This document shows, piece after piece, positions 20,562 to 59,679 of a stretch of DNA of 64,000 nucleotides. Both the position numbers and the translations under genes were made by a program. Within the stretch, counting starts at the first letter, position 1, and each line of letters starts with the position of its first letter. The notes beneath the pieces were generated by a model. The model saw only the letters and a list, made by a program, of their open reading frames with translations. It did no database searches and had not been told where the DNA came from. This DNA is from Octopus sinensis (taxonomy: Eukaryota): contig NC_043026.1 of the NCBI RefSeq assembly GCF_006345805.1, forward strand, positions 11,222,001 to 11,286,000, written 5' to 3'.

Positions 20562-20610
<49 letters not shown>

Positions 20611-20669: not shown

Positions 20670-20701
<32 letters not shown>

Positions 20702-36031: not shown

Positions 36032-36289
36032 AATTATGCTCCTCTCACAAAAATATAAAGATGATTGTCTCTTTTTTGCATAGACTTAATTTCTCACAAA
36101 AATTTATATTTCTACTTCTATATTTCCAATATGTTCTTTGCAGCTACCTGGAGATTCTGCAAATTCATTCGTAATCCTTGTTTGAGAAGAAAGCAAAATC
36201 CCCTGGTAAACATTCCAAATAGTGATATAGAGAACTGTTGCTATTTATCCCAAAACAGTGTTTTGTGTATAACATCTTCATTTAGTCTT

Positions 36290-36380
36290 TCAAAGATGAT
36301 AAAGGCTGCTGATGTATCAGGTGAACAAATATTCTTTGATGCCAGTATCACCTGATGATCTGAAATCACAGCAAAAAAAA
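36290..36380 (-). promoter_or_regulatory. Putative splice acceptor and leader of ZNF-3 (AG at 36361-36360); counterpart for ZNF-4 at 59600-59601 (+)
   Basis: TTTTTTGCTGTGATTTCAG|ATCATCAGGTGATACTGGC in both arms. Confidence 0.6.
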
Positions 36381-38359: not shown

Positions 38360-38590
38360 ATTGTGTACAGTGCTCAGGTGCACTACAACTCATCTAAAGT
38401 GCATATATAATCAGGTGTAGTTTCGGCGGATTTCGGGAAGCATGAGGGCCTTAAAGGATGCAGGGTCATGGCAGTCAACAACTGACGCAGGCAGTTTGTT
38501 CCATGCTTCAGCAACTCTGAGCGTGAAGAAATGTTTCCGAAAGTCATGGGAGCTGTGCTGCTTTCTGACTTTGTAGGCATGTCCACGTGT
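38360..38590 (-). mobile_element. CR1 3' fragment
   Basis: RGHAYKVRKQHSSHDFRKHFFTLRVAEAWNKLPASVV. Confidence 0.85.
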
Positions 38591-39033
38591 CCCTTTATGT
38601 TTTAATTGATTTTTGTTAGCCCTTGTGGCCAATAAACGAACGAATTATCATCATTATTATTATTATTAAAGCCTTAAAAATAAACCTTTGTCAACCTACC
38701 GCTTTCGTGCAATAACATCGAGTCAGTGCTCCATGAACAGCAAAAGTAATTATAAAACGGTTATCTGCACCGTCTATAGCAAGATCTTGCATGAATACTT
38801 GTATATTTCTTCTTACCTCCTCCAGGTAATTTCAGACGCAAAATATGCCGAGTGCTGTCGCGTATGTGTTAGGAGGATAGCTTCTTTTACTTAAAACAGC
38901 AGGGAGTTCGATACGATCGTCTCATTAAAGAGAGGCTTTCGGAACACCGGTGTTTCCACATATTGTATCTTGTGAAGGAGAAGTAGCCGGAACTTTGAGA
39001 CTAGCAAAAGACGAAGGCTTTTTGTCTACGCTA

Positions 39034-39836
39034 TCTCTTTTACTCTTTTACTTGTTTCAGTCACTTGACTGCGGCCGTGCAGGAGCACCGCCTTTAGTCG
39101 AACAAATCGACCACCAGGACTTATTCTTTGTAAGCCTAGTACTTATTCTATCGGTCATTTTTGCCGAACCGCTAAGTTACAGGGACGTAAACACACCAGC
39201 ATCGGTTGTCAAGCGATGTTGGGGGGGGGGGCAAACACAGACACGCAAACATATACACACACACACATACATACATACATATGTATATATATATATATAC
39301 ATATATACGATGGGCTTCTTTCAGTTTCCGTCTACCAAATCCATTCACAAGGCTTTGGTCAGCCTGAGGCTAGGGTAAAAGACACTTGCCCAAGGTGCCA
39401 CACAGTGGGACTGAACCTGGAACGATGTGGTTCATAAGCAAGCTACTTACCACACAGCCATGAGAGACTTTGCAAATGAGAATGGAATACTCGGTAGTGA
39501 GTTTGCGAGAAAAGGCTTTGGTCAGCCCGAGGCTATAGTAGAAGGGATAATAGTAGAAGCTGTCCAATGTTCCACACACTGGAATTGAACCTGGAGTTGC
39601 TTTATGTTTTTAATTAGTGGGCTGCAGAATAGAATGAAAAAAAGAATGTTGGTAAGAATATTTAATAAGCAGGAGTGGCTGTGTGGTAAGTAGCTTGCTA
39701 ACCAACCACATGGTTCCGGGTTCAGTCCCACTGCGTGGCATCTTGTGCAAGTGTCTTCTGCTATAGCCTCGGGCCGACCAATGCCTTGTGAGTGGATTTG
39801 GCAGACGGAAACTGAAAGAAGCCTGTCTTATATATG

Positions 39837-39873
<37 letters not shown>

Positions 39874-39890
39874 ATGTGTGTGTGTGTGTG

Positions 39891-39922
<32 letters not shown>

Positions 39923-40464
39923 ATGTGTTTGTGTGTCTGTGATTGTTCCCCTAGCATTGCTTGACAACCGATGCTGGTGTGTTTACGTCCCCGTCACTTA
40001 GCGTTTCGGCAAAAGAGACCAATAGAATAAGTACTGGGCTTACAAAGAATAAGACCCGGGGTCGATTTGCTCGACTAAAGGCGGTGCTCCAGCATGGCCG
40101 CAGTCAAATGGCTGAAACAAGTAAAAGAGAGAAAAGAGAGAGAAGTAGATAATATAATTTTTAGTAAATAATAATTCAAAATAATTAACAAAACAATCAC
40201 AAAAGTGGTTTTGGTGAATGTGTGGCTTTATACTGAACAAAGCAAAAACAAAACACTTCAGTTGTACAGGGTGTGTAAATGAATGTGTTATTAGTTGCGA
40301 AGAGGTTGAATTATGACTGTTTCCAGTCTTGAGGCAGCTTAACCATTATGACACAAAGCTGGATTGTTATGTCTTAAGAGGGAGGAAGTGAAGATAAAAT
40401 CGAAATAGCGACAATCAAATGATTTGAAAGTCATTATTTGAAGAGAGAGTGATGGAGAGAGGGT

Positions 40465-40514
<50 letters not shown>

Positions 40515-41657
40515 TAAAGAATAAATAGGAAAACAAGAACGAAAACAATCCATAAACTGTTGAACTGGTTTCCAATATACATTTGGGATTATCATATTTC
40601 AAGACCTGGTATCACAACAATACAGACTAGACTGACTCTGGTTGGTTGGTTGGCTGGTTGGTTGGTTGGTACATACATGCATATACATATATATATATAA
40701 GCGCAGGAGTGGCTGTGTGGTAAGTAGCTTGTTTGCCAACCACATAGTTCCAGGTTCAGTCCCACTGCGTGGCACCTTGGGCAAGTGCCTTCTACTATAG
40801 CCCCGGGCCGACCAATGCCTTGTGAGTGGATTTGGTAGACGGAAACTGAAAGAAGCCTGTCGTATATATGTATGTATATATATATGCATGTGTGTGTTTG
40901 TGTGTCTGTGTTTGTCCCCCTAGCATTGCTTGACAACCGATGCTGGTGTGTTTATGGTGTGTTTACTTAGCGGTTCTGCAAAAAAGAGACCAATAGAATA
41001 AGTACTGGGCTTACAAAAGAATAAGTCCCGGGGTCGAGTTGCTCGATTAAAGGCGGTGCTCCAGCATGGCCGCAGTCAAATGACTGAAACAAGTAAAAAA
41101 GTAAAAGAGAGTAAAGAGTATATTAATTTCGGGAAGTGAGAGGGGAAAAAAGAACAAGAATTGTGTGTGTGTGTATGACATATAAAACAAAGGCTTTATT
41201 ACATACACATCATGTAATTTTGAACTCAAATGTACAAAAACAAAATTATGAGGGCCTACTTGACCTAAGAACATCAGATAATGGGGTCCTTGACTGTTTT
41301 GAATAATAAGTAGCTTATGATTATCCTATTGTACTACATGCATGCATATATGTGTGTGTGTGTATACATATGTATTGCATGTGTGTATATATATATATAT
41401 GTATATGTATATATACATACATATACTCTTTTTCTTTTTCTTTTTTTACTCTTTTTACTTGTTTCAGTCATTTAACTGTGGCCATGCTGGAGCACCGCCT
41501 TTAATCGAGCAAATCGGACCCCGGGACTTATTCTTTGTAAGCCTAGTACTTATTCTATCGGTCTCTTTTGCCGAACTGCTTAGTGACAGGGACATAAACA
41601 CACCAACATTAGTTGTCAAGCAATGCTAGGGGGACAAACACAGACACACAAACACAT

Positions 41658-41688
<31 letters not shown>

Positions 41689-42950
41689 CATATATACGAC
41701 AGTCTTCTTTCAGTTTCCGTCTACCAAATCCACTCACAAGGCATTGGTCGGCCCGGGGTTATAGCAGATGACACTTGCCCAAGATGCCACGCAGTGGGAC
41801 TGAACCCTGAACCATGTGGTTGGTTCGCAAGCTACTTACCACACAGCCACTCCGGTGCCTATATGTATATATTCTTTTATTTTTTTATTTGTTTCAGTCA
41901 TTTGACTGTGGCCATGCTGGAGCACCACCTTTAGTCAAACAAATCAACCCCAGGGCTTATTCTTTGTAAGCCTAGTACTTATTCTCTGGCTCTTTTTGCC
42001 GAACCGCTAAGTTACAGAGACGTAAACACACCAATATCGGTTGTCAAGCAATGGTGAGGGGACAAACACAGACACACAAACATATATATACATATATATA
42101 TATATGACAGGCTTCTTTCAGTTTCTCTCTACCAAATCCCCACATAAGGCATTGGTCAGCCTGAGGCTATAATAGATGACATTTGCCCAAGGTGCCATGC
42201 AGTGGGACTGAACCCAGAACCATGTGGTTGGTAAGCAAGCTACTTACCACACGGCCACATGTCTGTGTATATATATATTTGTGTACATATGTATATGTGT
42301 GTATGTTTGTATAAAAATGTATGTGTATACACACGCTCATATATATTCGTTAGAGGAGCGGCGGAATAGTAATGGTGGTGAAGCTGGAGATGGCATAATC
42401 ATACAAAGAAAGAAAGAAAGAAAGGATGAAAGAAGTGAATGGGAGGAGGAAGAGGAGAGAAATATATTGTTTAATCGAGCAAATCGGACCCCGGGACTTA
42501 TTCTTTGTAAGCCTACTACTTATTCTATCGGTCTCTTTTGCCGAACCGATACGTTTACAGGGATGTAAACACACCAGCATCAGTTGTCGAGCGATGCTGG
42601 GGGGACAAGCACACACACACACAAACACACACACATACACATATATATATAAATATATACATATATACGACAGGCTTCTTTCAGTTTCCGTCTACCAAAT
42701 TCACTCACAAGGCATTGGTCGGCCCGGGGCTATAGCAGAAGACACTTGCCCAAGGTGCCACGCAGTGGGACTGAACCTGGAACCATGTGGTTGGTAAACA
42801 AGCTACTTACCACACAGCCACTCCTGCGCCTATCTATCTATATATTGTCAATAAATTCTAGCCCAAGACACTTGCCCAAGATGCCACGCAGTGGGACTGA
42901 ACCCGGAACCATGTGGTTGGTTAGCAAGCTACTTACCACACAGCCACTCC
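39034..42950. mobile_element. Dense cluster of SINE-B copies (about 39034-39460 -, 39669-40130 +, 40701-41110 +, 41444-41862 -, 41885-42258 -, 42470-42835 -, 42861-42950 -)
   Basis: Repeated family head and tail in both orientations. Confidence 0.85.
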
Positions 42951-43299
42951 TCTGTGTGAATTGTCTATGTAAAATGTTTGACCTAGACACTATAACACAC
43001 AAACCTGCGCACGCACACACACAACCACATCCGTATGCACTACAACATACACATGGAAAGACACTACAACATACATACACATACATTTAAACAAAGCTAC
43101 ACATAGACGCATATGTAGAAGGTGATGCCCGCTCCTTCCTGATGTGCTTTAAGTAACACCACAACTGCGGCATTCTCTGTTTCAACGAAGAGACTTTACA
43201 TGATATTCCCGAGAGAGAAAACTTCAGGCTGAAATTTGAATATTGTTGACTTGGGTAAATATTATTGTGATTATTATTTTAATTAATATAATAATGAAA

Positions 43300-43650
43300 T
43301 TATTGTATAGCAGTGCTCAGGTGCACCACAACTTGTCAGAAAGTGCGTATAAAGTATATGTAGTAATGTACGAATGTCTGGAAAGCGAACAATGTATGAG
43401 TCAGATACATGCTTGTGTGTGTATGGAGGGTAGAAAATCAAGTGTAGTGTTGGCGAATCTCAGAAAGCATGGAAGTTTTGAAGGATGCAGTGCTCCAACA
43501 ACTAACAACTGATGCCGGCAGTTTGTTCCATGTTTCAGCAACTCTTAGCGTGAAAAAATGTTTCCGAAAGTCATGGGAGCTGTGCTGTTTTCTGATTTTG
43601 TAAACATGTCCACGGGTGTTAGATGGGTGGAGTTTGAATAGGTGCTCAAT
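43300..43650 (-). mobile_element. CR1 3' fragment
   Basis: Same family as above, monomer. Confidence 0.85.
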
Positions 43651-44097
43651 TTACCCACTACACTCAATACATGAGTGTAGTGGGTGCTTAACAATTTACT
43701 AACTCATTTGCTTTGTTAAAGAATCATTAGAACTATTTCAAACATAAATATACCGTTATATTCAAAAAATATTTTTATTTTCAGACAGTATTTTATAAGA
43801 CTAGAAACTGTTATAATATTTTACAGTGTCACATTACATTTACAGAATATAATATGAAATATAGTACGTCTATATATTTGTTGTGCAAGATTTTTTACGT
43901 GAAGTCGTGTGTTGAAACAGATATTGTGTGTTTTTATTGGCTAAACTGGCAAAATGACCATTCCGAAATATAACAATATGAAATATAGTTTGGTTTAAAC
44001 TAGGAAAAATCCATTCGATGGAAATGAAAGGAGTGAAAATATTCAATTAATTAAACAGCATTTTAGGTAGTTTACAATGATTTCTAATTCTGGAGTC

Positions 44098-44460
44098 ATC
44101 ATCATCATCATTGTTTAACGTCCGTTTTCCATGTTAGCATGGGTTGGACGGTTCAACTGGGGTCTGGGAAGCCAGGAGGCTGCACCAGGCTCCAGTCTGA
44201 TCTGGCAGTGTTTCTACAGCTGGATGCCCTTCCTAATGCCAACTACTCCGTGAGTGTAGTGGGTGCTTTTTACATGCCACTGGCAGAGGGGCCACAGGAG
44301 GCTGGCAACGGCCACGATTGATTGGTGCTTTTTACGTGCCACTGGCACGTAGGCCAGTCGGGGCGGCACTGGCAACAGCCACGTTCGGATGGTTCTTTTA
44401 CATGCCACCAGCACTGGTATCACAACTACAATTTCCATTGATTTTTGAGCGATTTCGATT
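44098..44460 (-). mobile_element. Family C retroposon
   Basis: (CAT)n start on the + strand, body, three diverged units, then the upstream segment AAATCAATGGAAATTGTAG also seen near 14010. Confidence 0.75.
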
Positions 44461-45295
44461 TCAAAATTTGTAAATCAATTAAATTAATTGGTTATTTTTC
44501 GTAAACTCTATTTTTTAAAAGCTTAATCAAGGGGAATTGGACCCTGTGTAAGAGCCATTATTTTTCCAGGGTTTCAAGACTGGTAGGAAGAAGGCATTCT
44601 CAAAACAAGAGACCTAACATGAATGCATGCAACAGAAAAATCCTCTGTTAAAAGGAGGCCAAAGGACAGGTGGTTGTGTGAAAATAGGCTGTAGTCTACC
44701 ACATAGGGATTTGAACTCAGATCACAAAGAACCACATTAAATACACAGCAAAGATGCTGCAGTGTGGTTAGGGAGACTTGGCTGTTGTTTCTAAAAGGAC
44801 GAGTGCTACTGGAAAGGCTCCCTTGCCAACAAATATTGATTCCCATGTAAAAATTTTCCCTATGAAATTGAGTGGTGGGGTGGAGTGGAATTTCTCTGTG
44901 AAATTGGAGGGGGGGAATTTCCGAGGGTCTCACCCCACCCGCTATTTTCTGGACCAGAACAGCTCACATATATACGACAGGCTTCTTTCAGTTTCCGTCT
45001 ACCAAATCCACTCACAAGGCATTGGTCGGCCCAGGGCTATAGCAGAAGACACTTGCCCAAGATGCCACACAGTGGGACTGAACCCGGAACCATGTGGTTG
45101 GTAAGCAAGCTACTTACCACACAGCCACTCCTGCGCCTATCGTAGTTAATTCTAAATTTTAGTTTTCTAGTGAATGATATTCTAGTGTATAGTAATTTTA
45201 TTCGGTTACAGAAATACATAAATGTTTTGTTTGCATGTTTAAAATAATGAAGCAAACATCATCTCCCTGAAACTTTAATATTTTCAGAAAAGCTA

Positions 45296-45321
45296 AATGT
45301 TTTCTTTATATTTCATTATAG
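45296..45321 (+). promoter_or_regulatory. Putative 3' splice acceptor upstream of the 1804-aa CDS
   Basis: TTTTCTTTATATTTCATTATAG|ATTCACTATG. Confidence 0.6.
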
Positions 45322-45328
45322 ATTCACT

Positions 45329-48300
45329 ATGGAAGATCAAACAGAAAATACTTTAAGAACACACAAATCTCTGAAAAGAGATTCCTGTGACTCAACAACA
45401 AGTGTTGATGGAGTCTACAATCAAAAGTGTATATACTGGAGGAGAGAGATGTTACAGACACAACCTTCATCTCAGTCAATAACAAAACAAAAACGATGTA
45501 AAGAAGACCGTAAAAAGAGGGAAATAACTGGAAGACGAGGTGTTTTCGATAAGCACATATATTATACAAGATGCGATGCATATGAAGACAAAATTAAAAT
45601 GTTGATAAACTTCCAGGAAAAAATATGTACTTTTTTGAAACACATAGGACTGGATAAAAATGATTTCCTACAAGAATATACACAGAGAATAGATATTTTG
45701 ATGAAAGACATTCAGAAATACAATTACAATGAAGACTTTATTATTTTGGCAAAACTTGAATTGTTCTTGAAACACTATTTAAAGACAAATGTTTTACAAG
45801 ACAAACACAAGACCATTGAGGCACCAAAATTAATCAACAAATTTCGACCTCTTTCTCCAGTTGTAATCAGAGAAGCAAGGATCGATGAATCTGAAGATAC
45901 TGGTAACAACATAATATCCAATATTGTTGCAATACAAGGGGGAGTAGTAACATATTCCCACCATTGTATGACAATATGTTGTATGACAAGAAACGGTGAC
46001 AGAAATATTGTTCATTGCCCATCTTCTGCCACCGATTTCACCAGAATTGCTCAAGGCACTGTTCTGGCCACCCTACCCTTTAGAAAAACTATTCTTATTA
46101 TTAATTCCGTAAGCTTTAAAATCAAAACGCTTCCGTTTGGTTTCTATAAGGTTTCTTACCTAGAACATTCTATATTTGTGGGTGTAGAAATGTTTGCGAA
46201 GACAATTTACCTTGTGAACTGGGTTGATATGAGAATTAAAAATAAATTCAATACAAAAGAAATACCTGCAGATATTGCTGTAGGTCCACAGAATAACCTA
46301 TTAATATCGTTTTCCAATATTAATAGAGTTATCTGTTACAATCTGGATGGCCAGCAATTATTTGAGGTCATCACTAATTCTCTGGACCTAGCAACCAACA
46401 TCACTGCATACAAAGATAATTTCTATGTCCTTCAGGGACATATTATTTATAAAATTTCAGCTACAGGTCGTGTGGCAAAGAGAGATGTTGGCAGGAAATG
46501 CCGGCATATTTCTGTTGGAACTGATACTATTTTAGCAACAGATTATTTTGGTGTTGCTCACATCATCAGAACAGACAAAGATTTTTGGCCCAAGCTCTCT
46601 TACACTCAACAGCTACGTACCCCCAGTTTGAACAATCATATTTATATTGAAGATTGCTACAACATAACAAACATTCTACCAATGTCAATATTTTCTATAT
46701 TAGTAATCTACAATAATAAGAAAATTATATTATTCGCTGATACTGGGGAAATAATTAACCAAAATGATCTAACCTTCCTTGAGATTCCTTCTATCGTTTG
46801 TAGATTCAACACAAATAACTTTCTGGTGTTTTACCGCGAAATGAAAGGGCTTCAGTTTATCACCTGTCCTGAACTAAAAAAAGGACCTTTAATAAGGGTC
46901 CACACTGAATACATTGAAATATGTCATATCGTATCAAATAAGGTTTTAGCTCTGACCACCAATGAGAACAAAGATGAGGTACATATTCTGTTGATCAAGG
47001 AGGACAAAGTAGACATCATAGAAAGAATTTCTCTGGGACATGAAAATGTCACCATCGCTGCAACTCCATATAATTTTGTAGTTGTCAACGGAAGGAAAAA
47101 TAAACTGGTATTCTATTCCACATCAGGTGAAGAACTTTTTGAAAAATACCTTCCATTCTATGGCTTCCCTCATCACATCTACACAGATAATGTTTATTTT
47201 TATGTCCTGTTCAAAAGAGAGTCTGTTGTCGTATGTTACAGTATGTTTGGAGAAATGAAATGGCAGTGGAAACTACCTTTCCCTGTTTACCCTCACATTG
47301 CTGTTTTCCAAGGAACAGTTTATGTGCCGGATGTCGAATTCCACAGGATTCTTCTTTACAGGCATCACGACTGGTCTAGCTGTTGTTTACATGTCAAAAA
47401 TCCTTATATCAGAAATCTAAATCTACGACTCAAAGAAAAGGAAAATGACAAACTTCTCATTGCCAAAATACGTCATCTGGCAAATGGAGAGTTGGTGGTG
47501 TCCGACATAAATAATGATCGCTTGTTATACATTTCTAATGAAGGAGACATTGTGTTCAAATTATCTCTGCCATCTACTGCTACAGACATATGTCGATGGG
47601 ATTCTAATCATATAGGTGTTACATTACCCCTAGAGAAACAATTAAGGGTTATCGGAAACCTATCAAAAGCAGTTAGAACTGTGCTATTAAGACAGCCTTA
47701 TGTACGGGTGTGTAAGTTGGGTGAAGGTCAAATTGTTTGTTATTGTGATAAACCATCTCATTTAGATATTTTAGCCATTAATAAATATAATCAAGTTGAA
47801 ATAATTCATAGAATTGATATTCCTTTTGTAGTGAAATCATTAGAAATAGAAAAAGAAACGCTAAAGCTATTAATTGTGACAAAGCGAAAAGTTTTTCAGT
47901 ACAACACTAGAATAGGTGGTGGTGGTCATGCTTATGGTAGACATGGTCGTCGTCCTCATCGTCATGGTCATCATTGCTGTAATATTAAGATGGTCCCCAG
48001 TATTTTACTGTCCCAAGTGAAACCTCCCCCCAATTTCTTTGGTGGATCCATTGATAAAATGTTTGTTTATCTGATAGAGAATGGTCGTATGTTTGCTTTA
48101 AAGAAGCATAATTTGTTCGTTAATGATCTCATTACAAATAATCAACTTAATATTAATATCGACCTGGTAGATGTATTTTCCAGAAACATTTCTGTCAGTG
48201 AAATGTTGTCTTCTACTTTATATCTACAGGATCTGACAGTTTCTGATAAAGCCAGACATATTCATGTCCCTCAAGGTTTTGGAGACAGACGACCAGTGAG

Positions 48301-50743
48301 GATTGCTCCCTTGGTTATTACTGAAAATAACCTGATTGCGGGATACGATAAGGAGAATAAAAACATTAAGATCCTCACATTTGATGGTCGGCTTCTGGAT
48401 TCTATCAAATTGAATGTTGATTACGATATCAAAATGTATCGATGGCAGTCAAACACACTGGTTATTACGACTAAGGATTATGGTGAGAAATATGGACTGT
48501 TGACATTAAAAGTGGAATTTCCATTGTCGTTGGTAATATACCAGACGAAAAATACCTATAGCTATATCGCTTCTTTTTCAAATAATCAACTGCTGCTTTA
48601 TAAATTGGAAAGTGGTGGTGGAGTTAGTTTATATGTCATTGAAATTGATGAAATACATTTGACTGTGAATGAAATTAAAAAAATAGACATATCTGAACCA
48701 TTAACAAGAAAGAGACTTAATATTAATCCCCATGTTGGTATTATAATTACTGCTGATGATGTCATCATTGTCAACACCTCTAGATTCGTCATTTTTGTCA
48801 ATAGTGACGGTCAATATTTACATTCAGTTAGACACTATATGGCAGGTTTTGGTTATTATGACAGGACGACAATTGACGACAGTTATTTGTACATTCAAGG
48901 TGAGTGGGATAAGTATTGTGGTTACGCTGAATATAGAAAAATTGTGTGTTTGACACAAACTGGGGAATACTACAAAATATTTTTAAATCAAAGATTTTAT
49001 AAACATAAAGTAGATTTCTCCAGTATAAACTGTAAGGGACCAAAGTTTGCTGGAAGCTGCCACCAGGAAGAGAATAAATTATATATTGAAGGGTTGTTTA
49101 TGGTTAATCGAGAAAGTTTCTCTGTTTATCGTTTGCAAACAGACAAATGTTCTGTTCAAGTAAAAGATATTGATATCTCTGACGAAGGAAAGACAGTTGT
49201 ATGTGAAAAAGCCAATAGTGGAAATGTTGAAATATTTGATGAAGACGGGAGGTTGCTATGTCACAGAAATGTTGGAAGTTTAGTTGGTGGTGTGTGTTTT
49301 ACAGAAGAAAGAGACGTAATGGTCACACTTCCACAAAGACAAGAAATATTTCAACTAACGCAACAAGATTTAGAGAAATATAAAGTATGGCAAAGTGAGG
49401 TACCTTATGGTGTAATATGGAGGAAAGTGGGAAATATTTACTGGTGTCTACATATTAACTTGATTGAATGTCATAGCATAAAGATTGATGGGGACCAAGT
49501 GAACATTCTGGAATCTGTGTCGTTAGTAAAGCTTAATTCTAGTCTTCATTTCCTTTCCAATAAATCCCAGATGAACAACGAAATATTCAGTAATGAGTTA
49601 ACTAATAGACTGAAATATAGTGGGAAAGATGAAGAAGGGAGAAGAGGTAAGTCAGGTGAAATAATTGGTGAAGGTAGATTAAAGGTGAGATGTGGTAGTT
49701 ACATAGCGGAGAGTATGTTAGGAAGTGACGAAATATCCGTGAGGAGACTTCCATATAGAACAGCAATGGTCCCTCTTTCCATTCCTGCATTCGACGAACC
49801 TATTAATTATAATTATGTTGACATTAGGGACTACAACAGCAAACTAATTAAGTTAGACGACAATGTGTATGTGTTGATGTTTAGAGATACTGTCACATTA
49901 ATTAGCAGAACCACAGGTGACATACTTCAACATAAACAACTACCAAAACAACAACCACTAGGTATATGTCGGTGGACAGATGAACGATTCATAGTCGTCT
50001 TTGGTAAAGAAATGATGGTCTTCAACAGAGATCTCTGTTGTTTAAGAACCATCAACACTGAGAAGTACTACAACACTGTTTATAAATACAATGACAATCA
50101 ACTTGTGTGTGGTGGTCATTATATTAGAGACATAACTCAAAATGAGAGAGAGAAGCACTCTAAAGAGAAACACTACAACAATATTTACTACAAATGCATC
50201 GACCACGACGCCTACGACTCTTATTATGTAGATGTTGTTGATATCAACGATGGGACATGTAAATATGAAGTGTGTCTTGGAGAAACGATGAAATATGGAA
50301 AATATGAGGGAGATGCGGTGGTGTTCGATGTAGCAGTGACAGCTTTTGGTGATGTTGTTGTTGTGAGAGCGGAGTATGAAGAGGAGGAAGACTTGAATTA
50401 TGATTATGATTTCTGTCTTGTTGACTGGTACAGGGAAGAGTCGTTGGTCAGGAGGATAGAGCTAGTACCAGGAGAAATTAATTTCAAATTTGATATCTAC
50501 AGACCTTGTCTGACAGTAGTTGGTGAATATGTTTATATAACAGATTTAGAAAACAATATATACCAAATACCTGGACAAACTGAACATCAAACATCTGAAA
50601 ATACAGCAAAATATTTGCTACTCAGGTGGGACGATAATGAAGTATTCCAAGTTCTTGGTTTTGATGCTTCAGATAATTCTTTCATGGTTTTTGGAATTAT
50701 TCCAGGACGTCAATCCTTTGCTTTCTTTCATTATGACAAATAA
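45329..50743 (+). CDS. 1804-aa intronless protein: helical N-terminus plus about six tandem NHL/TolB-like beta-propeller units
   Basis: 5.4-kb non-repetitive open frame. A motif like PSxATD(I/F)xR...VTLPxxKxLxII recurs near aa 231, 485, 748, 1030, 1316 and 1541. Beta-strand-rich composition, no signal peptide, polypyrimidine+AG acceptor 7 nt before the ATG. Confidence 0.85.
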   Translation: MEDQTENTLRTHKSLKRDSCDSTTSVDGVYNQKCIYWRREMLQTQPSSQSITKQKRCKEDRKKREITGRRGVFDKHIYYTRCDAYEDKIKMLINFQEKICTFLKHIGLDKNDFLQEYTQRIDILMKDIQKYNYNEDFIILAKLELFLKHYLKTNVLQDKHKTIEAPKLINKFRPLSPVVIREARIDESEDTGNNIISNIVAIQGGVVTYSHHCMTICCMTRNGDRNIVHCPSSATDFTRIAQGTVLATLPFRKTILIINSVSFKIKTLPFGFYKVSYLEHSIFVGVEMFAKTIYLVNWVDMRIKNKFNTKEIPADIAVGPQNNLLISFSNINRVICYNLDGQQLFEVITNSLDLATNITAYKDNFYVLQGHIIYKISATGRVAKRDVGRKCRHISVGTDTILATDYFGVAHIIRTDKDFWPKLSYTQQLRTPSLNNHIYIEDCYNITNILPMSIFSILVIYNNKKIILFADTGEIINQNDLTFLEIPSIVCRFNTNNFLVFYREMKGLQFITCPELKKGPLIRVHTEYIEICHIVSNKVLALTTNENKDEVHILLIKEDKVDIIERISLGHENVTIAATPYNFVVVNGRKNKLVFYSTSGEELFEKYLPFYGFPHHIYTDNVYFYVLFKRESVVVCYSMFGEMKWQWKLPFPVYPHIAVFQGTVYVPDVEFHRILLYRHHDWSSCCLHVKNPYIRNLNLRLKEKENDKLLIAKIRHLANGELVVSDINNDRLLYISNEGDIVFKLSLPSTATDICRWDSNHIGVTLPLEKQLRVIGNLSKAVRTVLLRQPYVRVCKLGEGQIVCYCDKPSHLDILAINKYNQVEIIHRIDIPFVVKSLEIEKETLKLLIVTKRKVFQYNTRIGGGGHAYGRHGRRPHRHGHHCCNIKMVPSILLSQVKPPPNFFGGSIDKMFVYLIENGRMFALKKHNLFVNDLITNNQLNINIDLVDVFSRNISVSEMLSSTLYLQDLTVSDKARHIHVPQGFGDRRPVRIAPLVITENNLIAGYDKENKNIKILTFDGRLLDSIKLNVDYDIKMYRWQSNTLVITTKDYGEKYGLLTLKVEFPLSLVIYQTKNTYSYIASFSNNQLLLYKLESGGGVSLYVIEIDEIHLTVNEIKKIDISEPLTRKRLNINPHVGIIITADDVIIVNTSRFVIFVNSDGQYLHSVRHYMAGFGYYDRTTIDDSYLYIQGEWDKYCGYAEYRKIVCLTQTGEYYKIFLNQRFYKHKVDFSSINCKGPKFAGSCHQEENKLYIEGLFMVNRESFSVYRLQTDKCSVQVKDIDISDEGKTVVCEKANSGNVEIFDEDGRLLCHRNVGSLVGGVCFTEERDVMVTLPQRQEIFQLTQQDLEKYKVWQSEVPYGVIWRKVGNIYWCLHINLIECHSIKIDGDQVNILESVSLVKLNSSLHFLSNKSQMNNEIFSNELTNRLKYSGKDEEGRRGKSGEIIGEGRLKVRCGSYIAESMLGSDEISVRRLPYRTAMVPLSIPAFDEPINYNYVDIRDYNSKLIKLDDNVYVLMFRDTVTLISRTTGDILQHKQLPKQQPLGICRWTDERFIVVFGKEMMVFNRDLCCLRTINTEKYYNTVYKYNDNQLVCGGHYIRDITQNEREKHSKEKHYNNIYYKCIDHDAYDSYYVDVVDINDGTCKYEVCLGETMKYGKYEGDAVVFDVAVTAFGDVVVVRAEYEEEEDLNYDYDFCLVDWYREESLVRRIELVPGEINFKFDIYRPCLTVVGEYVYITDLENNIYQIPGQTEHQTSENTAKYLLLRWDDNEVFQVLGFDASDNSFMVFGIIPGRQSFAFFHYDK

Positions 50744-50893
50744 ATATTTTCATAAATGTTAAACTTTGATATTATTAATGTTATTACTGGGTTCACCTGT
50801 GAATCAAACCCGCATTGCTTACATTGCATTCTACATACTAACAATTATTGTTGTAACATTCTTCAACACACACACCATTTGCGTGTATATATA

Positions 50894-52482
50894 TCTATAT
50901 ATATAAAACTGTAGTTGTGTGAGTGTCTGTCCCCTTCGATTTAGATTCCTAACTACTCCCACATTTTGCGGTGCAGTTTAACCAAATTCGGGTATCTTAT
51001 AGTCGTGATTCATATCGAGCCCTTCTGGGTATTAGCATGAGTCTACGATTTTAAAAATAATTTAACATCATTTTTTATTCCATTTTAATGCATAATTTTT
51101 CGTGTGTCGATGGCGGCGGAGTTGGCGTCCATGGTCACACCTGCACCTGTTTGCTTCTCCCCCTTCTTCCCTCCCTCGTGAAGCTGTGGGGAAGGGAGTG
51201 TAAGGAAATCAACGTCGTAAAGCGTTGTCAAGGAGACCAGCGTTCTTTTAGAACAACGACTTCATGGCTTGAAGACACCAAAACAGAAATGGCTAAGAAA
51301 GCCCGAATTGGCATCTATAAGGGAAGCAACTCTCTAAAAATGCTTATATAGTTATTTCCCTTACAAACCCGAGCAACGCCGGGCGATACTGCTAGTATTT
51401 TCATAAATGTTAAACTTTGATATTATTAATGTTATTACTGGGTTCACCAGTGAATCAAACCCGCATTGCTTACATTGCATTCTACTCACTAACAATTATT
51501 GTTGTAACATTCTTCAACACACACCATTTGCGTGTATATATATCTTTATATATAAAAGAGAAGTTGTGTGTCTGTCTCCTACGATTTAGATTCCTAACTA
51601 CTCCCACATTTTGCGGTGCAGTTTAACCAAAACTGGGTATCTTATAGTCGTGATTCATATCGAGCCCTTCTGGGTATTAGCGTGCGTCTACGATGAGTCT
51701 ACGATTTAAAAAAAAAATTACAATCATTTTTTCCATTTTAATGCATTTTTTCGCTATTATATAAGGGAAGTAACTCTCTAAAAATGTCTACGATGAGTCA
51801 ACGATTTAAAAAAAAAATTTACCATCATTTGTTTTCCATTTTAATGCATTTTTTGCTATTTTTTGGCTATAACTCTCTAAAAATGCTTATATAGTTATTT
51901 CCCTTACAAACCCGAGCAACGCCGGGCGATACTGCTAGTATTTTCATAAATGTTAAACTTTGATATTATTAATGTTATTACTGGGTTCACCAGTGAATCA
52001 AACCCGCATTGCTTACATTGCATTCTACTCACTAACAATTATTGTTGTAACATTCTTCAACACACACCATTTGCGTGTATATATATCTTTATATATAAAA
52101 GAGAAGTTGTGTGTCTGTCTCCTACGATTTAGATTCCTAACTACTCCCACATTTTGCGGTGCAGTTTAACCAAAACTGGGTATCTTATAGTCGTGATTCA
52201 TATCGAGCCCTTCTGGGTATTAGCGTGCGTCTACGATGAGTCTACGATTTAAAAAAAAAATTACAATCATTTTTTCCATTTTAATGCATTTTTTCGCTAT
52301 TATATAAGGGAAGTAACTCTCTAAAAATGTCTACGATGAGTCAACGATTTAAAAAAAAAATTTACCATCATTTGTTTTCCATTTTTAATGCATTTTTTGC
52401 TATTTTTTGGCTATAACTCTCTAAAAATGCTTATATAGTTATTTCCCTTACCAACCCGAGCAACGCCGGGCGATACTGCTAG
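50894..52482 (+). mobile_element. Three Helitrons (50894-51395, 51543-51938, 52086-52482) separated by copies of a 149-bp host segment
   Basis: Each has a TC start and hairpin+CTAG end; the second and third are essentially identical (period 543 bp) and differ internally from the first. Confidence 0.9.
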
Positions 52483-52532
52483 TATTTGTATACAATGTTC
52501 AGTATATGTGTGTGCATGCATATATAAACCAA

Positions 52533-53552: not shown

Positions 53553-53707
53553 TGGCTGTGTGGTAAGTAGCTTGTTTACCAACCACATGGTTCCGGGTTC
53601 AGTCCCACTGCGTGGCATCTTGGGCAAGTGTCTTCTACTATAGCCTCGAGCCGACCAAAGCCTTCTGAGTGGATTTGGTAGACGGAAACTGAAAGAAGCC
53701 CGTCTTA

Positions 53708-53740
<33 letters not shown>

Positions 53741-53945
53741 GCGTGTGTGTGTGTTTGTCCCCCTAGCATTGCTTGACAACCGATGCTGGTGTTTTTATAT
53801 CCCCGTTACTTAGCGGTTCGGCAAAAAGAGACAGATAGAATAAGTACTGGGCTTACAAAAGAGTAAGTCCCGGGATCGAGTTGCTCGATTAAAGGCAGTG
53901 CTCCAGCATGGCCGCAGTCAAATGACTGAAACAAGTAAAAGAGAG
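53553..53945 (+). mobile_element. SINE-B
   Basis: GGCTGTGTGGTAAGTAGC head through GAAACAAGTAAAAGAG tail. Confidence 0.85.
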
Positions 53946-54557
53946 TTACTAAACACTTTTAAACTTCGTATACTGGTAGAATGCGTTACATAAAACATTT
54001 TTTTCTCTTGGCTTTCTTGAGAAAATTCTGTAGTTTGTAAGCTATTTGTTGTTAAATTTCTTGCATTTCGGCAACTTCAACCAATCAATGACGTCTATTG
54101 AGGTGAATACAATTACTGCTGTAGTTTGTCAACTACAATTTCCTGCGGTGTCTACTCAGTATGTCCTGTTATTTATGACATATTTCATATCAGTTACGTT
54201 CGTATGAATAAAAGATTATCGTTATTAAACTTTTATTAATAAACACATATTCTACATATTCTAAGTTCACAACATATGCAGTTTTAATTTTCCTCTCTGT
54301 TGCACAGATACGCACATCACATATTATATATTCGTTTAAGAAACAGATTGGGTTTATTTACATTTCTGAAGAAAAAAAAAGATAGGCGATCCTTCGGTAT
54401 AGGTACCGTAAGTGGCTTTGTTTACATTTCTGAAGATAACAGAAACCCTTTTCTCCTACCCCTAACCCTAACCCCCCATATATATATAAAAAAAAACAAC
54501 TCTTTCTTGAAATGTATCCGGTACTTCCGGTACCTATACCGAAGTTACGCAATTTTT

Positions 54558-54893
54558 GGCAATCTTTCGTCTCTAGTAGACCTTTCCGTTGATTTCCGTA
54601 AAAAACTTCTTTTTTTTTTACATATGGGCTTGCGGGACCTCCTATTGAAGTAATGAGAGCGAAAGAGACTAAGAGAAAGTGATTGTATGACGTGGGAAGT
54701 TCTTTTGAAGTTACCGTGCATGGGAAACATTGATGTACATGTGTGTGTGTGTGTGTTTGATGGGGTGTGGGAGACAGACAGTATGTTGTGTAAGTGAAGT
54801 GCTTCTGTTAGTGTTCCCGCAAGCCCATATGTAAAAAAAAAGAAGTTTTTTACGGAAATCGACGGAAAGGTCTACTAGAGACGAAAGATCGCC
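54558..54893. mobile_element. MITE, same family as 2001-2420
   Basis: Perfect 8-bp TSD CAATTTTT. Confidence 0.85.
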
Positions 54894-55320
54894 CAATTTT
54901 TTTTTTATTGGTCAGTTAAAAAAAAAAAAAAAAAAAACCACCGATCAGCAGAGAATTTGTTCCTTGATAGCAAAGACTATGCCTAGTCTCAAAGTTCCAG
55001 CTTCTTCTGGCTTACGAGACACAACATACTGATACACCGGTGCCCAGAAAGCAGTTCTTCTCCTAAGACATACAACAGAACATTCAGCAAGTTTTTCGGC
55101 CGAAACATCCTAGACGCGTTAAGAAGAAATATGCAAACATTCATTCCAGATCTCACTGTAGACAGTGCAGTGTAGACAGTTCCCTGATTTATGTTATTTG
55201 TGGAGCATTGAACCAATTTTAACAAAACGAAAATGTAAGCTGTCACAGGTTTATTTTAAGGCCCCAATAATAATGATAGAATTATGTGAAACCTTCGCGG
55301 TTACAGTAATTATGTTGAAG

Positions 55321-55550
55321 GCGGCGAGCTGGCAGAAACGTTAGCACGCCGGGCGAAATGCTTAGCAGTATTTCGTCTGCCGCTACATTCTGAGTTCAAA
55401 TTCTGCCGAGGTCGACTTTGCCTTTCATCCTTTCAGGGTCGATTAAATAAGTACCAGTTACGCACTGGGGTCGATATAATCGACTTAATCCGTTAGTCTG
55501 TCCTTATTTGTTCTCTCTGTGTTTAGCCCCTTGTGGGTAGTAAAGAAATA
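55321..55550 (+). mobile_element. Full-length SINE-A monomer
   Basis: 15-bp TSD GTAATTATGTTGAAG at 55306-55320 and 55551-55565. Confidence 0.9.
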
Positions 55551-55669
55551 GTAATTATGTTGAAGTGAAAACACATAACAATCGGAGAAATATATTTCCT
55601 CGACTTCAGTAATAACTTCGTAAGTGAAATGTTGGTCTATGATTTTCCCAAACCCTTTGATCGACTGTT

Positions 55670-57100
55670 GCTCTCTTTTACTCTTTTACTTGTTTCAGTC
55701 ATTTGACTGCGGCCATGCTGGAGCACCGCCTTTAGTCGAGCAACTCGACCCCGGGACTTACTCTTTTGTAAGCCCAGTACTTATTCTATCGGTCTCTCTT
55801 TTTGCCGAACCGCTAAGTAACGGGGACGTAAACACACCAGCATCGGTTGTCAAGCAATGCTAGGTGGGACAAACAGACACACAAACACACACACGCATAT
55901 ATATACATATACATATATACGACAGGCTTCTTTCAGTTTCCGTCTACCAAATCCACTCACAAGGCTTTGGTCGGCCCGAGGCTATAGTAGAAGACACTTG
56001 CCCAAGATGCCACGCAGTGGGACTGAACCCGGAACCATGTGGTTGGTAAACAAGCTACTTACCACACAGCCACTCAAAGTGAATTAGTAAGAAATATATA
56101 TGAATAAAACGGCGATATTAATTATCAAAATGGAGACCGCTTAATTAGTAAACATCGGTAACTTCAAACTTGCTGAAAATATGGAAATTAATATATCACT
56201 AGGTATTAGCATAAACAGCAACTTCGAATAATTAATCTCCTTCTTGCTATGTGTGACGATATAACTATACATTATGAGAGAATGTGCGTATTTGGGGCTT
56301 GGGTAACCTTCCCTATCAGTACATACGTGGTAATCCTATAGAATAGAGTCGGAAATTATGTTGTGCACTCTTTACTCTTTTACTTGTTTCAGTCATTTGA
56401 CTGCGGCCATGCTGGAGCACCGCCTTTAGTCAAGCAAATCGACCCCGGGACTTATTCTTTGTAAGCCCAGTACTTATTCTATCGGTCTCTTTTGCCGAGC
56501 CGCTAAGTCACGGGAACGTAAACACACCAGCATCGGGGGACAAACACAGACACACACACATATATATATACATATATACGACAGGCTTCTTTCAGTTTCC
56601 GTCTACCAAATCCACTCACAAGGCATTGGTCGGTCCAGGGCTATAGCAGAAGACACTTGCCCAAGATGCCACGCAATGGGACTGAACCCGGAACCATGTG
56701 GTTGGTTAGCAAGCTACTTACCACACGAGCCACTCCTGCGCCTATATATATATATACGACAGGCTTCTTTCAGTTTCCGTCTACCAAATCCACTCACAAG
56801 GCATTGGTCGGCCCGGGGCTATAGCAGAAGACACTTGCCCAAGATGCCACGCAGTGGGACTGAACCCGGAACCATGTGGTTGGTTAGCAAGCTACTTACC
56901 ACACGAGCCACTCCTGCGCCTATATATATATATATACGACAGGCTTCTTTCAGTTTCCGTCTACCAAATCCACTCACAAGGCATTGGTCGGCCCGGGGCT
57001 ATAGCAGAAGACACTTGCCCAAGATGCCACGCAGTGGGACTGAACCTGGAATCATGTGGTTGGTTAGCAAGCTACTTACCACACAAGCCACTCCTGCGCC
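55670..57100 (-). mobile_element. Two SINE-B copies (55670-56075; 56368-57100 with triplicated 5' half)
   Basis: Family consensus; three tandem head segments in the second copy. Confidence 0.85.
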
Positions 57101-57315: not shown

Positions 57316-59095
57316 TCGTTTAGCGTCCGCTTTCCATGCTAGCATGGGTTGGACGGTTCAACTGGGGTCTGGGAAGCCCAAAGGCTGCACCAGGCTCCAG
57401 TCTGATCTGGCAGAGTTTAAAACAGCTGGATGCCCTTCTTAACGCCAACCACTCCGTGAGTGTAGTGGGTGCTTTTTACGTGCCACCAGCACAGGTGCCA
57501 GACGAGGCTGGCAAACGGCCACGATCGGATGGTGCTTTTTATGTGCCACCTGCACAGGTGCCAGACGAGGCTGGCAAATGGCCACGATCGGATGGTGCTT
57601 TTTACGTGCCACCGGCACAGGGGCCAGGCGAGGCTGGCAAACGGCCACGATCGGATGGTGCTTTTTACGTGCCACCTGCACAGGTGCCAGACGAGGCTGG
57701 CAAACGGCCACGATCGGATGGTGCTTTTTACGTGCCACCGGCACAGGGGCCAGACGAGGCTGGCAAACGGCCACGATCGGATGGTGCTTTTTACGTGCCA
57801 CCTGCACAGGTGCCAGACGAGGCTGGCAAACGGCCACGATCGGATGGTGCTTTTTACGTGCCACCGGCACAGGGGCCAGGCGAGGCTGGCAAACGGCCAC
57901 GATCGGATGGTGCTTTTTACGTGCCACCTGCACAGGTGCCAGACGAGGCTGCCAAACGGCCACGATCGGATGGTGCTTTTTACGTGCCACCGGCACAGGG
58001 GCCAGGCGAGGCTGGCAAACGGCCACGATCGGATGGTGCTTTTTACGTGCCACCTGCACAGGTGCCAGACGAGGCTGGCAAACGGCCACGATCGGATGGT
58101 GCTTTTTACGTGCCACCGGCACAGGGGCCAGACGAGGCTGGCAAACGGCCACGATCGGATGGTGCTTTTTACGTGCCACCGGCACAGGGGCCAGGCGAGG
58201 CTGGCAAACGGCCACGATCGGATGGTGCTTTTTACGTGCCACCGGCACAGGTGCCAGACGAGGCTGCCAAACGGCCACGATCGGATGGTGCTTTTTACGT
58301 GCCACCGGCACAGGGGCCAGGCGAGGCTGGCAAACGGCCACGATCGGATGGTGCTTTTTACGTGCCACCTGCACAGGTGCCAGACGAGGCTGGCAAACGG
58401 CCACGATCGGATGGTGCTTTTTACGTGCCACCGGCACAGGGGCCAGACGAGGCTGGCAAACGGCCACGATCGGATGGTGCTTTTTACGTGCCACCTGCAC
58501 AGGTGCCAGACGAGGCTGGCAAACGGCCACGATCGGACGGTGCTTTTTACGTGCCACCTGCACAGGTGCCAGATGAGGCTGGCAAACGGCCACGATCGGA
58601 TGGTGCTTTTTACGTGCCACCTGCACAGGTGCCAGACGAGGCTGGCAAACGGCCACGATCGGACGGTGCTTTTTACGTGCCACCTGCACAGGTGCCAGAC
58701 GAGGCTGGCAAACGGCCACGATCGGATGGTGCTTTTTACGTGCCACCGGCACAGGGGCCAGACGAGGCTGGCAAACGGCCACGATCGGATGGTGCTTTTT
58801 ACGTGCCACCGGCACAGGGGCCAGGCGAGGCTGGCAAACGGCCACGATCGGATGGTGCTTTTTACGTGCCACCTGCACAGGTGCCAGACGAGGCTGGCAA
58901 ACGGCCACGATCGGATGGTGCTTTTTACGTGCCACCTGCACAGGTGCCAGACGAGGCTGCCAAACGGCCACGATCGGATGGTGCTTTTTACGTGCCACCG
59001 GCACAGGGGCCAGGTGAGGCTGCCAAACGGCCACGATCGGACGGTGCTTTTTACGTGCCACCGCCACGGGGCCCAGGCGAGGCTTAAAATATAAA
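57316..59095 (-). repeat. Family C retroposon with expanded 63-bp VNTR (about 25 units)
   Basis: Body at 57316-57470; unit GGTGCTTTTTACGTGCCACC(T/G)GCACAGG(T/G)GCCAG(A/G)CGAGGCTG(G/C)CAAACGGCCACGATCGGAT. Confidence 0.95.
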
Positions 59096-59679
59096 TAAAT
59101 AGTTGCACATTTATCCTTGTTTCTTGTGCGTCTTTGGTTCCCCCCAAACCACCGTGTTAAAGGAATCAGTGACGAACGATTGATAGAACACATGGGGATA
59201 CTGGTTTCATTCGAAAACACCAAGTTTTCACCCCATAACTCACTTTTTAAGTATCTTCTTTGTCTTATAATGTTCTTTTTGTTGTGATTTCATGGTAACC
59301 CTATAGAATAGGGGTCGGTGAACTAGGATAAATTATCCCAAGTGGGGTACAAATGAAATTCTTGTGGGTAATGAGGACTCGTTAGATATAAGTAAAATAC
59401 AGGGCAGAGAAGATGATGGCCAGAGATTGGATAGGGTAAAAGGGTGAATGTGGTGAATGGAGGAGAGGTGATCGATGATGAAAATGAGTCACATGGAAGG
59501 TGGAGAAGAGGTGGGGAGTGTATTTGATGACTAGAGATTGTTCCATTATTTTTTAAGTATCCTCTTTGTCTTATAATATTTCTTTTTTGCTGTGATTTCA
59601 GATCATCAGGTGATACTGGCATCAAAGAATATTCGTTCACCTGATACATCAGCAGCCTTTATCATCATTAAATGATGGG

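Follow-up and report, generated by a model that had tools for sequence, protein, structure and literature searches.

An octopus gene inside a zinc-finger cluster and its probable product, a ligase-less protein of six NHL-type propeller units from an octopod family

Introduction

What kind of protein is specified by a 5.4-kb open reading frame (ORF) that lies intact among zinc-finger arrays and repetitive DNA in the genome of Octopus sinensis? The frame is situated in a 64,000-nucleotide stretch of contig NC_043026.1, referred to here as the window, and the corresponding gene, LOC115226288, is annotated as encoding an 'uncharacterized protein'. From the letters of the window alone (the sequence-only reading), it had been proposed that the gene consists of a single exon and specifies a B-box-less protein with about six tandem, deeply diverged beta-propellers. 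The present analysis leads us to conclude, with a probability of roughly 70%, that the gene encodes a ligase-less protein of six NHL-propeller units, which belongs to an octopod-specific family derived from TRIM-NHL proteins and would serve as a multivalent binding platform. What appears to be new is the architecture together with the lineage-specific expansion of the family, the NHL or TRIM-NHL ancestry of the units being of a known kind.

Results

Six units related to NHL propellers

The frame at 45329..50743 of the forward strand runs from ATG to stop through 1804 codons without an internal stop and predicts a protein of 209.5 kDa. The other five frames across the same interval contain 81-189 stops each. 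With stop trinucleotides making up 4.75% of the window, the chance of an open frame of 1804 codons is about 1e-38, and the intact 5.4-kb frame described in the sequence-only reading was thus borne out.

For profile comparisons, an alignment of 18 full-length family members was cut into an N-terminal piece and six units (U1 to U6), with the bounds listed in Table 1 and the border between U3 and U4 placed at aa 975/976 or 985/986. Each unit matched a profile of mollusc TRIM-NHL propellers, which is an alignment of seven NHL propellers found by an exhaustive HMMER search, at 93.7-99.7% over 123-213 columns and from the same start position in the profile. U4 is the least diverged NHL propeller of the six. 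Control comparisons with WD40 and PQQ propellers (HH) mostly gave values below 10%, the exceptions being U5 against WD40 (65.6% over 76 columns) and U4 against PQQ (40.9%).

When the profile of the family was compared with the sequences in the PDB, the top 12 matches were without exception NHL propellers (of TRIM71, Brat, TRIM3, TRIM2 and Thin), with weak expect values (E) of 1.4e-3 upward. A phmmer search of the PDB with the ORF product alone gave no match. The Pfam NHL family (PF01436) was not matched by the window protein, and 2 of the 18 family members matched it below threshold, with a best E of 0.002.

When 1.84 billion representative proteins were searched exhaustively with HMMER and a profile of aa 706-1804, the protein P0066 was retrieved at E 8.8e-12 (P numbers denote proteins and L numbers genomic loci), and the family profile matched the same protein at 96.8%. 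P0066, an uncharacterised protein of the cuttlefish Acanthosepion (Sepia) pharaonis (CAE1315789) with RING, B-box and NHL domains by Pfam, is the nearest relative of the family outside the octopods. It is a genuine TRIM protein of the RING, B-box, coiled-coil (RBCC) and NHL type: in the RBCC region it resembles TRIM28 and TRIM2/3, and in the propeller it matches TRIM2/3 at 1.6e-11 as well as the NHL propellers of PknD and Pizza. The other outside matches, which include a bivalve protein (P0071), carry by Pfam a RING and a B-box (P0067), a B-box and NHL (P0068) or, in several cases, NHL only. A search with P0066 aimed at the parental TRIM subfamily returned one weak match.

All the motifs on which the claim of a six-fold recurrence had been based were found, at aa 231/245, 487, 748/764, 1034, 1320/1332 and 1543, which gives spacings of 256, 261, 286, 286 and 223 aa. 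The six motifs take up the same place in one TRIM-NHL propeller profile, columns 115-119, corresponding to strand A of blade 2; in U3, for example, the octopus 'PSTATDICRW..VTLPLEKQL' stands opposite the cuttlefish 'SPPHGICLW..VTLPENKQI'. Since all motifs occupy identical profile columns, their recurrence reflects homology, with strands A and B of blade 2 present in each unit, and not chance. Indeed, profile comparisons between the units gave in-register matches for the pairs U4-U6 (95.7%), U3-U6 (94.7%), U2-U4 (93.8%), U4-U5 (91.0%), U3-U4 (87.1%), U2-U3 (84%) and U1-U2 (84%). Self-BLASTP of the window protein revealed no internal repeat; the units are therefore deeply diverged, and the repeats are visible at the profile level only. 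The N-terminal 185 aa matched none of the units in the profile-profile comparison.

Table 1. Features of the gene and of its predicted product in the window. The column 'Unit vs NHL' gives the match of each unit to the mollusc TRIM-NHL propeller profile; pI, isoelectric point; pLDDT, predicted local distance difference test score of AlphaFold2 (AF2).
Feature	Positions	Strand	Residues (aa)	Unit vs NHL	Remarks
Conserved block 5' of ATG, ~130 nt	45197..45328	+			polypyrimidine tract and AG acceptor 7 nt 5' of ATG (...TTTTCTTTATATTTCATTATAG/ATTCACTATG); probably 3' end of leader intron plus short 5' untranslated region (UTR)
Complete coding sequence (CDS) incl. stop codon	45329..50743	+	1-1804		O. 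sinensis LOC115226288, CM016888.1 11,267,329-11,272,743
N-terminal region	45329..45883	+	1-185		basic (pI 9.4); residues 1-58 disordered; K/R cluster aa 53-70
Predicted helical segment	45503..45790	+	59-154		four helices, pLDDT 45-68 (AF2)
U1	45884..46663	+	186-445	94.5%	23 strands (198-414), pLDDT ~80-88; PSSATDFTR..VLATLPFRK
U2	46664..47443	+	446-705	93.7%	23 strands (446-677), pLDDT ~80-90; PSIVCRF
U3	47444..48253	+	706-975	96.8%	18 strands (711-925); PSTATDICRW..VTLPLEK
U4	48254..49138	+	976-1270	99.7% (E 2e-26)	24 strands; IKMYRW
U5	49139..49828	+	1271-1500	95.4%	13+4 strands; acidic, pI 5.4; GGVCF..VTLPQRQ
U6	49829..50740	+	1501-1804	97.5%	22 strands, several long loops; acidic, pI 4.7; PLGICRW
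Short conserved 3' flank	50779..50905	+			76-80% identity to O. vulgaris paralogs; paralog similarity stops here; probably conserved portion of 3' UTR

Predicted structure

Two AF2 models were built, covering aa 1-1000 and aa 940-1804, each from an alignment of 29 sequences. After the disordered and helical N-terminal parts, the models are all-beta beyond aa 198, with domain cores at pLDDT 70-90. U1, U2, U4 and U6 were each modelled with 22-24 strands, which fits six four-stranded blades, and the N-terminal strand of U4 (976-979) probably closes the last blade (blade 6). Of all units, U3 has the largest number of residues invariant in the family (38). An insert rich in Gly, His and Arg lies at about aa 864-890 of U3, and the conserved aa 926-975 are poorly modelled because both models end at this junction. 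In U5, 13 strands at 1278-1407 make up three confident blades and are followed by four strands at 1452-1483, with about 50 residues between the two sets lacking a modelled structure and pLDDT values below 50 at aa 1400-1473, a stretch into which the four later strands partly extend. The disordered insert of U5 would thus comprise about 50-70 aa. U5 may be an incomplete propeller. With respect to charge, the N-terminus, U1, U3 and U4 are basic and U5 and U6 acidic.

Foldseek searches of the PDB with both halves returned multi-propeller proteins exclusively (E 1e-13 to 1e-21), namely IFT-A, the UTP/90S tandem WD40 proteins, LRP4/LRP2, DDB1 and doublet-microtubule WD40 proteins. The template modelling scores (TM-scores) of 0.11-0.24 are low, as is to be expected, because the domain orientations differ. 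Structure prediction thus supports the repeated propellers that had been anticipated from the motifs.

The N-terminal region and the missing TRIM modules

The N-terminal region is the least conserved part of the family, with 2 invariant residues, and it matched neither the propeller profile nor an alignment of the RING, B-box and coiled-coil regions of TRIM proteins (HH). A helical segment had been proposed to precede the propellers; such a segment is indeed predicted, but it spans about 96 aa and not about 120. Its helices are of low confidence in the AF2 model and show no similarity to the TRIM coiled-coil region in the profile comparison. They could possibly represent an oligomerisation or coiled-coil element.

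No RING or B-box was detected in the ORF, either with Pfam at E<=10 or by HH comparison with the TRIM alignment. Likewise, the six-frame translation of the 9.3 kb upstream (36031-45328) contained no RING/B-box Cys/His pattern, in agreement with the earlier description of the protein as B-box-less. Lacking a RING, the protein would be unable to be an E3 ligase by itself. The window protein also has no signal peptide or transmembrane-like segment, and its N-terminus is hydrophilic.

Exon structure of the gene

The description of the gene as single-exon applies only to the coding sequence. In six family loci (those of P0009, P0028, P0031, P0045, P0008 and P0011) the gene length equals three times the number of residues plus 3, and the coding sequence is therefore intronless across the octopods. 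On the other hand, the polypyrimidine tract and the AG acceptor located 7 nt before the ATG are common to the window gene and the loci L003, L009 and L010, and this conserved acceptor implies that a 5' leader exon is likely to exist. For the block that includes the acceptor, identity is 90% with the O. vulgaris paralogs at L009/L010 and 77% with L003. Proteins of these O. vulgaris paralogs are about 65% identical to the window protein, so that the block is conserved at least as much as the coding sequence; upstream of it, conservation collapses. The block may contain a regulatory or 5'-UTR element.

In the O. vulgaris gene models of P0003 and P0006, a distant 5' exon, located 7-17 kb upstream and contributing 2-5 codons, is joined exactly to this acceptor. 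For P0012, an upstream exon of up to 31 codons was placed about 11.5 kb away by tblastn. The UTRs in the O. vulgaris annotation were added from PASA assemblies of Iso-Seq and RNA-seq data (PMC10700109), and the 5' exons of these three models are therefore probably transcript-derived. They are not conserved among the paralogs or with the window, and a search of the window for a leader exon found SINE (short interspersed element) and low-complexity matches only. Similarity between the paralog loci stops about 130 nt 5' and 160 nt 3' of the ORF.

The NCBI protein model for LOC115226288 has 1691 aa, since two in-frame GT..AG segments are excised: 48119-48229 (111 nt, aa 931-967) and 50004-50231 (228 nt, 76 residues, approximately aa 1559-1634). 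We rejected these two 'introns' as splicing of the main isoform, because residues that are invariant in the family lie in both of them and the paralog models show nothing equivalent. They probably represent artefacts of the annotation or minor isoforms of the 'exitron' type.

Distribution of the family

Homology searches yielded 42-43 clusters at 90% identity, all of them 'uncharacterized', from O. sinensis, O. vulgaris, O. bimaculoides and one unlabelled run. When 5.8 billion proteins were searched by a word-indexed profile method, no matches from outside Octopus were gained; only the exhaustive HMMER search brought in two proteins of Argonauta hians (1913 and 1925 aa). The latter are colinear with the window protein, with 35% identity from aa 92 on and 1721 alignable codons. 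Therefore, the six-unit design is older than the split between Octopus and Argonauta, in keeping with the earlier view that the units are too diverged for a recent tandem duplication. Within the database coverage of the exhaustive search, the six-unit architecture was found in neither decapodiforms nor non-cephalopods, and it appears to be restricted to octopods. Neither the family nor any architecture of six NHL propellers was found in Pfam, the PDB or the searchable literature on cephalopod TRIM-NHL proteins and octopus NHL repeats, which agrees with the initial failure to recognise the architecture.

Orthologs of O. sinensis and O. vulgaris are 96-99.8% identical, and one pair from O. sinensis and O. 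bimaculoides is 85% identical. O. vulgaris underwent a recent burst of paralogs, the copies being 85-95% identical to each other. The window gene shares 69% identity with its nearest relative and has no annotated ortholog in O. vulgaris or O. bimaculoides. In Octopus the paralogs are dispersed among C2H2 zinc-finger genes; of those fetched, every O. sinensis copy maps to CM016888.1 and every O. vulgaris copy to OX597841.1. A C2H2 array was present within the 10-kb flanks of all three Octopus paralog loci scanned (P0009, P0028 and P0031), and the Argonauta locus was without one.

Many family members are truncated gene models. A truncated family fragment at L009 245-2346 (-), annotated as a 411-aa gene, is 74-91% identical to aa 3-784 of P0003. 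It lies on the other strand near the 5' exon annotated for P0003, some 18 kb upstream of the P0003 coding exon, and illustrates the partial or pseudogenised state of many of the family members. The gene for the O. sinensis paralog P0009 (L003 10001-15406, +) lies wholly within the annotated bounds of an opposite-strand gene (1-18460, -), which has a 1956-aa product and carries a 15-finger C2H2 array at L003 16906-18313. Either gene nesting or a run-on model could account for this. In O. vulgaris, P0004 is annotated as fused with a C2H2 array (2053 aa) and P0016 with a hAT-like DUF4371 domain (2120 aa). Run-on gene models are the probable explanation of these fusions, although genuine chimeric transcripts that include neighbouring genes are conceivable. 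A Logan contig for P0041 starts in a SINE and has no poly(A), and it therefore cannot be called a transcript.

Selection and module exchange

Ratios of non-synonymous to synonymous substitution (dN/dS, or omega) were estimated by the Nei-Gojobori method. The values were 0.40 for the ortholog pair P0031/P0028 from O. sinensis and O. bimaculoides (dN 0.071, dS 0.177), 0.40 for the window gene against P0009 (dN 0.209, dS 0.519), 0.41 against P0031 (dN 0.357, dS 0.874) and 0.41 against Argonauta P0045 (dN 0.551, with a saturating dS of 1.331). In the comparison with P0009, omega ranged from 0.27 to 0.55 by unit and was below 1 in every unit (all P<0.02). Judged by these ratios, the window gene is under a purifying selection that is real but relaxed, and the earlier proposal of purifying selection was thereby substantiated.

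The loops were sorted by AF2 strand assignment into top-face loops (B-C and D-A) and bottom-face loops (the rest), and on this assignment the conservation of top-face loops (0.69) was below that of bottom loops (0.75) and strands (0.77; Mann-Whitney P=0.002). This low conservation was driven by U4 (0.57 vs 0.81), whose top-face loops are the most variable in the family, while the top faces of U3 and U5 are conserved. In all five pairs compared, omega was higher in top loops (0.50-0.75) than in strands (0.37-0.43) and also higher than in bottom loops.

In a young O. vulgaris trio (P0008/P0011/P0012), omega reached 1.5-2.4 in U4 and 1.1-2.8 in the C-terminal half of U6, which is the fastest-evolving part of the protein; these signals above 1 are nominal (best P 0.015 and 0.03), not corrected for multiple testing and confounded by gene conversion. 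U1-U3 and U5 of the same trio mostly had an omega of about 0.3-0.5, with 0.80 for U5 in P0008-P0012. Between units of one gene pair, dS differed 10-20-fold in O. vulgaris (L007/L008/L011 and L009/L010). For instance, dS between P0008 and P0011 was 0.72 in U1 and 0.01-0.06 in U2-U6, and between P0003 and P0006 it was 0.44-0.46 in U4 and U6b and 0.012 in U3. Contrasts of this size point to module exchange or gene-conversion tracts between paralogs, which would therefore be mosaics. The unit-level omega and dS patterns are suggestive, not conclusive. As far as the sequences tell, the family evolves by birth-and-death with module exchange, under overall constraint.

Discussion

In the history that we propose, the NHL domain of a cephalopod TRIM-NHL gene would have been multiplied six-fold within one gene, and the ligase module would have been lost before Octopus and Argonauta separated. 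The gene would then have been multiplied by local duplication, with copies exchanging modules. The protein would most likely act as a multivalent intracellular binding platform in which each propeller presents the top face to a ligand, either RNA or protein, by analogy with Brat, LIN-41/TRIM71 and TRIM2/3. The conserved U3 and U5 would serve invariant partners, the fast-changing U4 and C-terminal part of U6 would serve variable targets, and the N-terminal helices may allow self-association. A receptor-like role could also be envisaged. A more far-reaching idea, which we put forward tentatively and consider rather unlikely, is that the family constitutes a diversifying intracellular recognition system of octopods. 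U3 and U5 would in that case be conserved for signalling or anchoring partners, and gene conversion would reshuffle the hypervariable U4 and C-terminal U6 among the paralogs, with selection for the recognition of new targets, either RNA or protein, which could include viruses, transposons or edited transcripts. Such a system may have expanded, and may function, alongside its C2H2 neighbours.

Several observations weigh against reading the protein as a platform of six NHL propellers. Pfam thresholds were reached neither by the ORF product nor by the 17 aligned relatives, the two Argonauta proteins and three further paralogs. The mean pLDDT of the models is low (63 for aa 1-1000; 68, with a predicted TM-score of 0.66, for aa 940-1804), and the closure of the units into rings is deduced from strand counts and Foldseek matches. 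The count of about six propellers given in the sequence-only reading stands as six NHL-type units by profile, in all-beta models, but not as six full rings: four were modelled, and U3 and U5, which are recognisably NHL-like over their first three blades only and were not modelled as full six-bladed rings, are incomplete or uncertain. The distinction between top and bottom loops hinges on the AF2 strand assignment, and the omega values above 1 carry the reservations given with them. Lastly, a look-up of the exact window protein in the gene-position collection retrieved no record.

This missing record would also fit a non-functional relic, that is a recently dead or never-expressed copy that is still open since it is young, as would the best annotated O. 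vulgaris or O. bimaculoides match of 69%, the many truncated models in the family and the lack of an AATAAA within 550 nt 3' of the ORF. However, all 1804 codons are open against the odds stated above, every unit shows an omega below 1, and the acceptor and start codon are intact and conserved. Moreover, the dS of 0.38-0.52 to the nearest paralogs indicates that the lineage of the window gene is old, and we therefore regard a relic as improbable, if slightly less so than the other alternatives. That the protein is still a TRIM-type E3 ligase, with RING and B-box on upstream exons spliced to the acceptor before the ATG, is very improbable. The conserved acceptor itself and the distant, apparently transcript-derived 5' exons of three O. 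vulgaris paralog models speak for such hidden exons, but these add 2-31 residues only and are unconserved, and the 9.3 kb upstream hold no RING/B-box pattern in any frame. In addition, the ME... start is kept across the paralogs, and several models, including that of Argonauta, begin at that ATG.

We give just as little credence to the possibility that the gene belongs to a mobile or viral element, or descends from one, and owes its copy number to transposition. It would account for a multicopy, lineage-restricted gene with an intronless coding sequence in SINE-rich surroundings, and for the fusion of the P0016 model to a hAT-like domain. Yet Pfam scans revealed no transposase, reverse transcriptase, integrase or capsid domain, the short stretches of paralog similarity on either side of the ORF include no unit-specific terminal repeats, the closest relatives are host TRIM-NHL proteins, and omega within the octopod family is about 0.4. 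Furthermore, a C2H2 array on the minus strand lies downstream of the gene in both members of the ortholog pair from O. sinensis and O. bimaculoides, at distances of about 6 kb and 7 kb to the stop. A viral Foldseek library gave generic propellers only and is uninformative on origin. The least probable alternative is that the protein represents a scaffold with several propellers of the WD40 or YWTD type (IFT-, EML-, DDB1- or LRP-like) and is not derived from NHL proteins. The top Foldseek matches and the 65.6% of U5 in the WD40 control point in this direction, but the Foldseek ranking favours any multi-propeller chain and its TM-scores are low. Pfam gave no WD40, EGF or Ldl_recept_b signal, and the protein lacks a signal peptide and a membrane anchor. 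The NHL profile matches of 94-99.7% extend over much longer alignments, and the PDB sequence matches are all NHL propellers.

Among known systems, the TRIM-NHL proteins (Brat, LIN-41/TRIM71, TRIM2, TRIM3, TRIM32, Thin/Abba and Mei-P26) resemble the octopus protein in that each of its six units is homologous to an NHL propeller, that a predicted helical region precedes the propellers where TRIMs carry the coiled coil, and that it is of a cytoplasmic or nuclear type, lacking a signal peptide. The top face of the propeller is the RNA-binding face in Brat and LIN-41, and other TRIM-NHL proteins bind partners. In the octopus protein the top face, as its fastest-evolving site class, is likely to be the working surface. 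The octopus protein differs from the TRIM-NHL proteins in having no RING or B-box, hence no intrinsic E3 activity, in having six propellers instead of one, in N-terminal helices without detectable homology to the TRIM coiled coil, in a sequence below the Pfam NHL threshold, and in its octopod-restricted, multicopy family.

NHLRC2, NHLRC3, malin/NHLRC1, the NHL part of teneurin, the bacterial PknD sensor and the designed 'Pizza' propellers belong to the same repeat superfamily without a full tripartite motif. To our knowledge, each of them has a single propeller and none has six in tandem, nor do we know of any other protein with six NHL propellers. None of these NHL-only or NHL-plus proteins ranked above the TRIM-NHL matches in the exhaustive search. 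Several propellers per chain, with many binding faces, are also found in the YWTD arrays of LRP1/2/4/5/6, in EML5/6, DDB1/CPSF160/SF3B3, IFT-A and UTP proteins. These scaffolds, however, represent other propeller families without a sequence relationship and in another domain context: WD40 propellers are seven-bladed, and YWTD arrays are extracellular with EGF spacers.

The octopus gene adds an undescribed family of proteins of about 200 kDa, encoded within zinc-finger clusters and so far annotated as 'uncharacterized' without a domain. It would be a case of a single-propeller regulator turned into a multivalent scaffold. Lineage-specific expansions, e.g. of protocadherins and C2H2 zinc fingers, are a feature of octopus genomes, and the present family shows birth-and-death, module exchange and fast-evolving loops on a binding face, a pattern also found in gene families of recognition or defence. 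Should the propellers bind RNA in the manner of Brat and LIN-41, the family could have a bearing on RNA regulation in a group of animals known for its extensive RNA editing. A practical gain is the domain definition for the roughly 40 genes of the family, along with corrected gene models.

Genomic surroundings

The gene had been placed inside a zinc-finger cluster, and the window indeed contains four C2H2 arrays that flank it, at 12799-13827 (+), 24049-25662 (-), 35180-36031 (-) and 60558-61496 (+). The intergenic DNA of the window consists of SINE copies, TA microsatellites and a 63-bp satellite. Many SINE-like copies (core ...GGGACTGAACCCGGAACCATGTGGTTGG...) flank the gene on both sides and in both orientations (41586-45150 and 53553-56000). 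The 5.4-kb ORF contains none of them, as expected from the initial description of a frame free of transposable elements in a region rich in them. The flanking copies make many long inverted-repeat pairs across the gene, e.g. 44966-45127 with 53553-53714, which are 94% complementary.

The satellite is GC-rich, with a unit of 62-63 bp, and forms arrays at 57468-59084, 8189-8901, 11652-12103, 14227-14432 and 44262-44422, the largest having 25.7 copies at 95% identity. Because of this satellite, five overlapping 'ORFs' of 330-590 aa appear on both strands at 57336-59223, together with local peaks in GC content; a Pfam scan of these 'ORFs' gave no match, and they are not genes. Long (TA)n microsatellites extend over 15597-16278 (344 copies) and 20300-20746 (227 copies), and the former gives rise to the ORFs of 227 and 243 aa listed at 15516-16281. 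Directly downstream of the gene, a unit of about 543-650 bp is present in three tandem copies (50677-52500), the first of which begins within the last 67 nt of the ORF. Between 51328-51627 and 51871-52170 these units are 100% identical, and the copy that overlaps the end of the ORF shows 63% identity.

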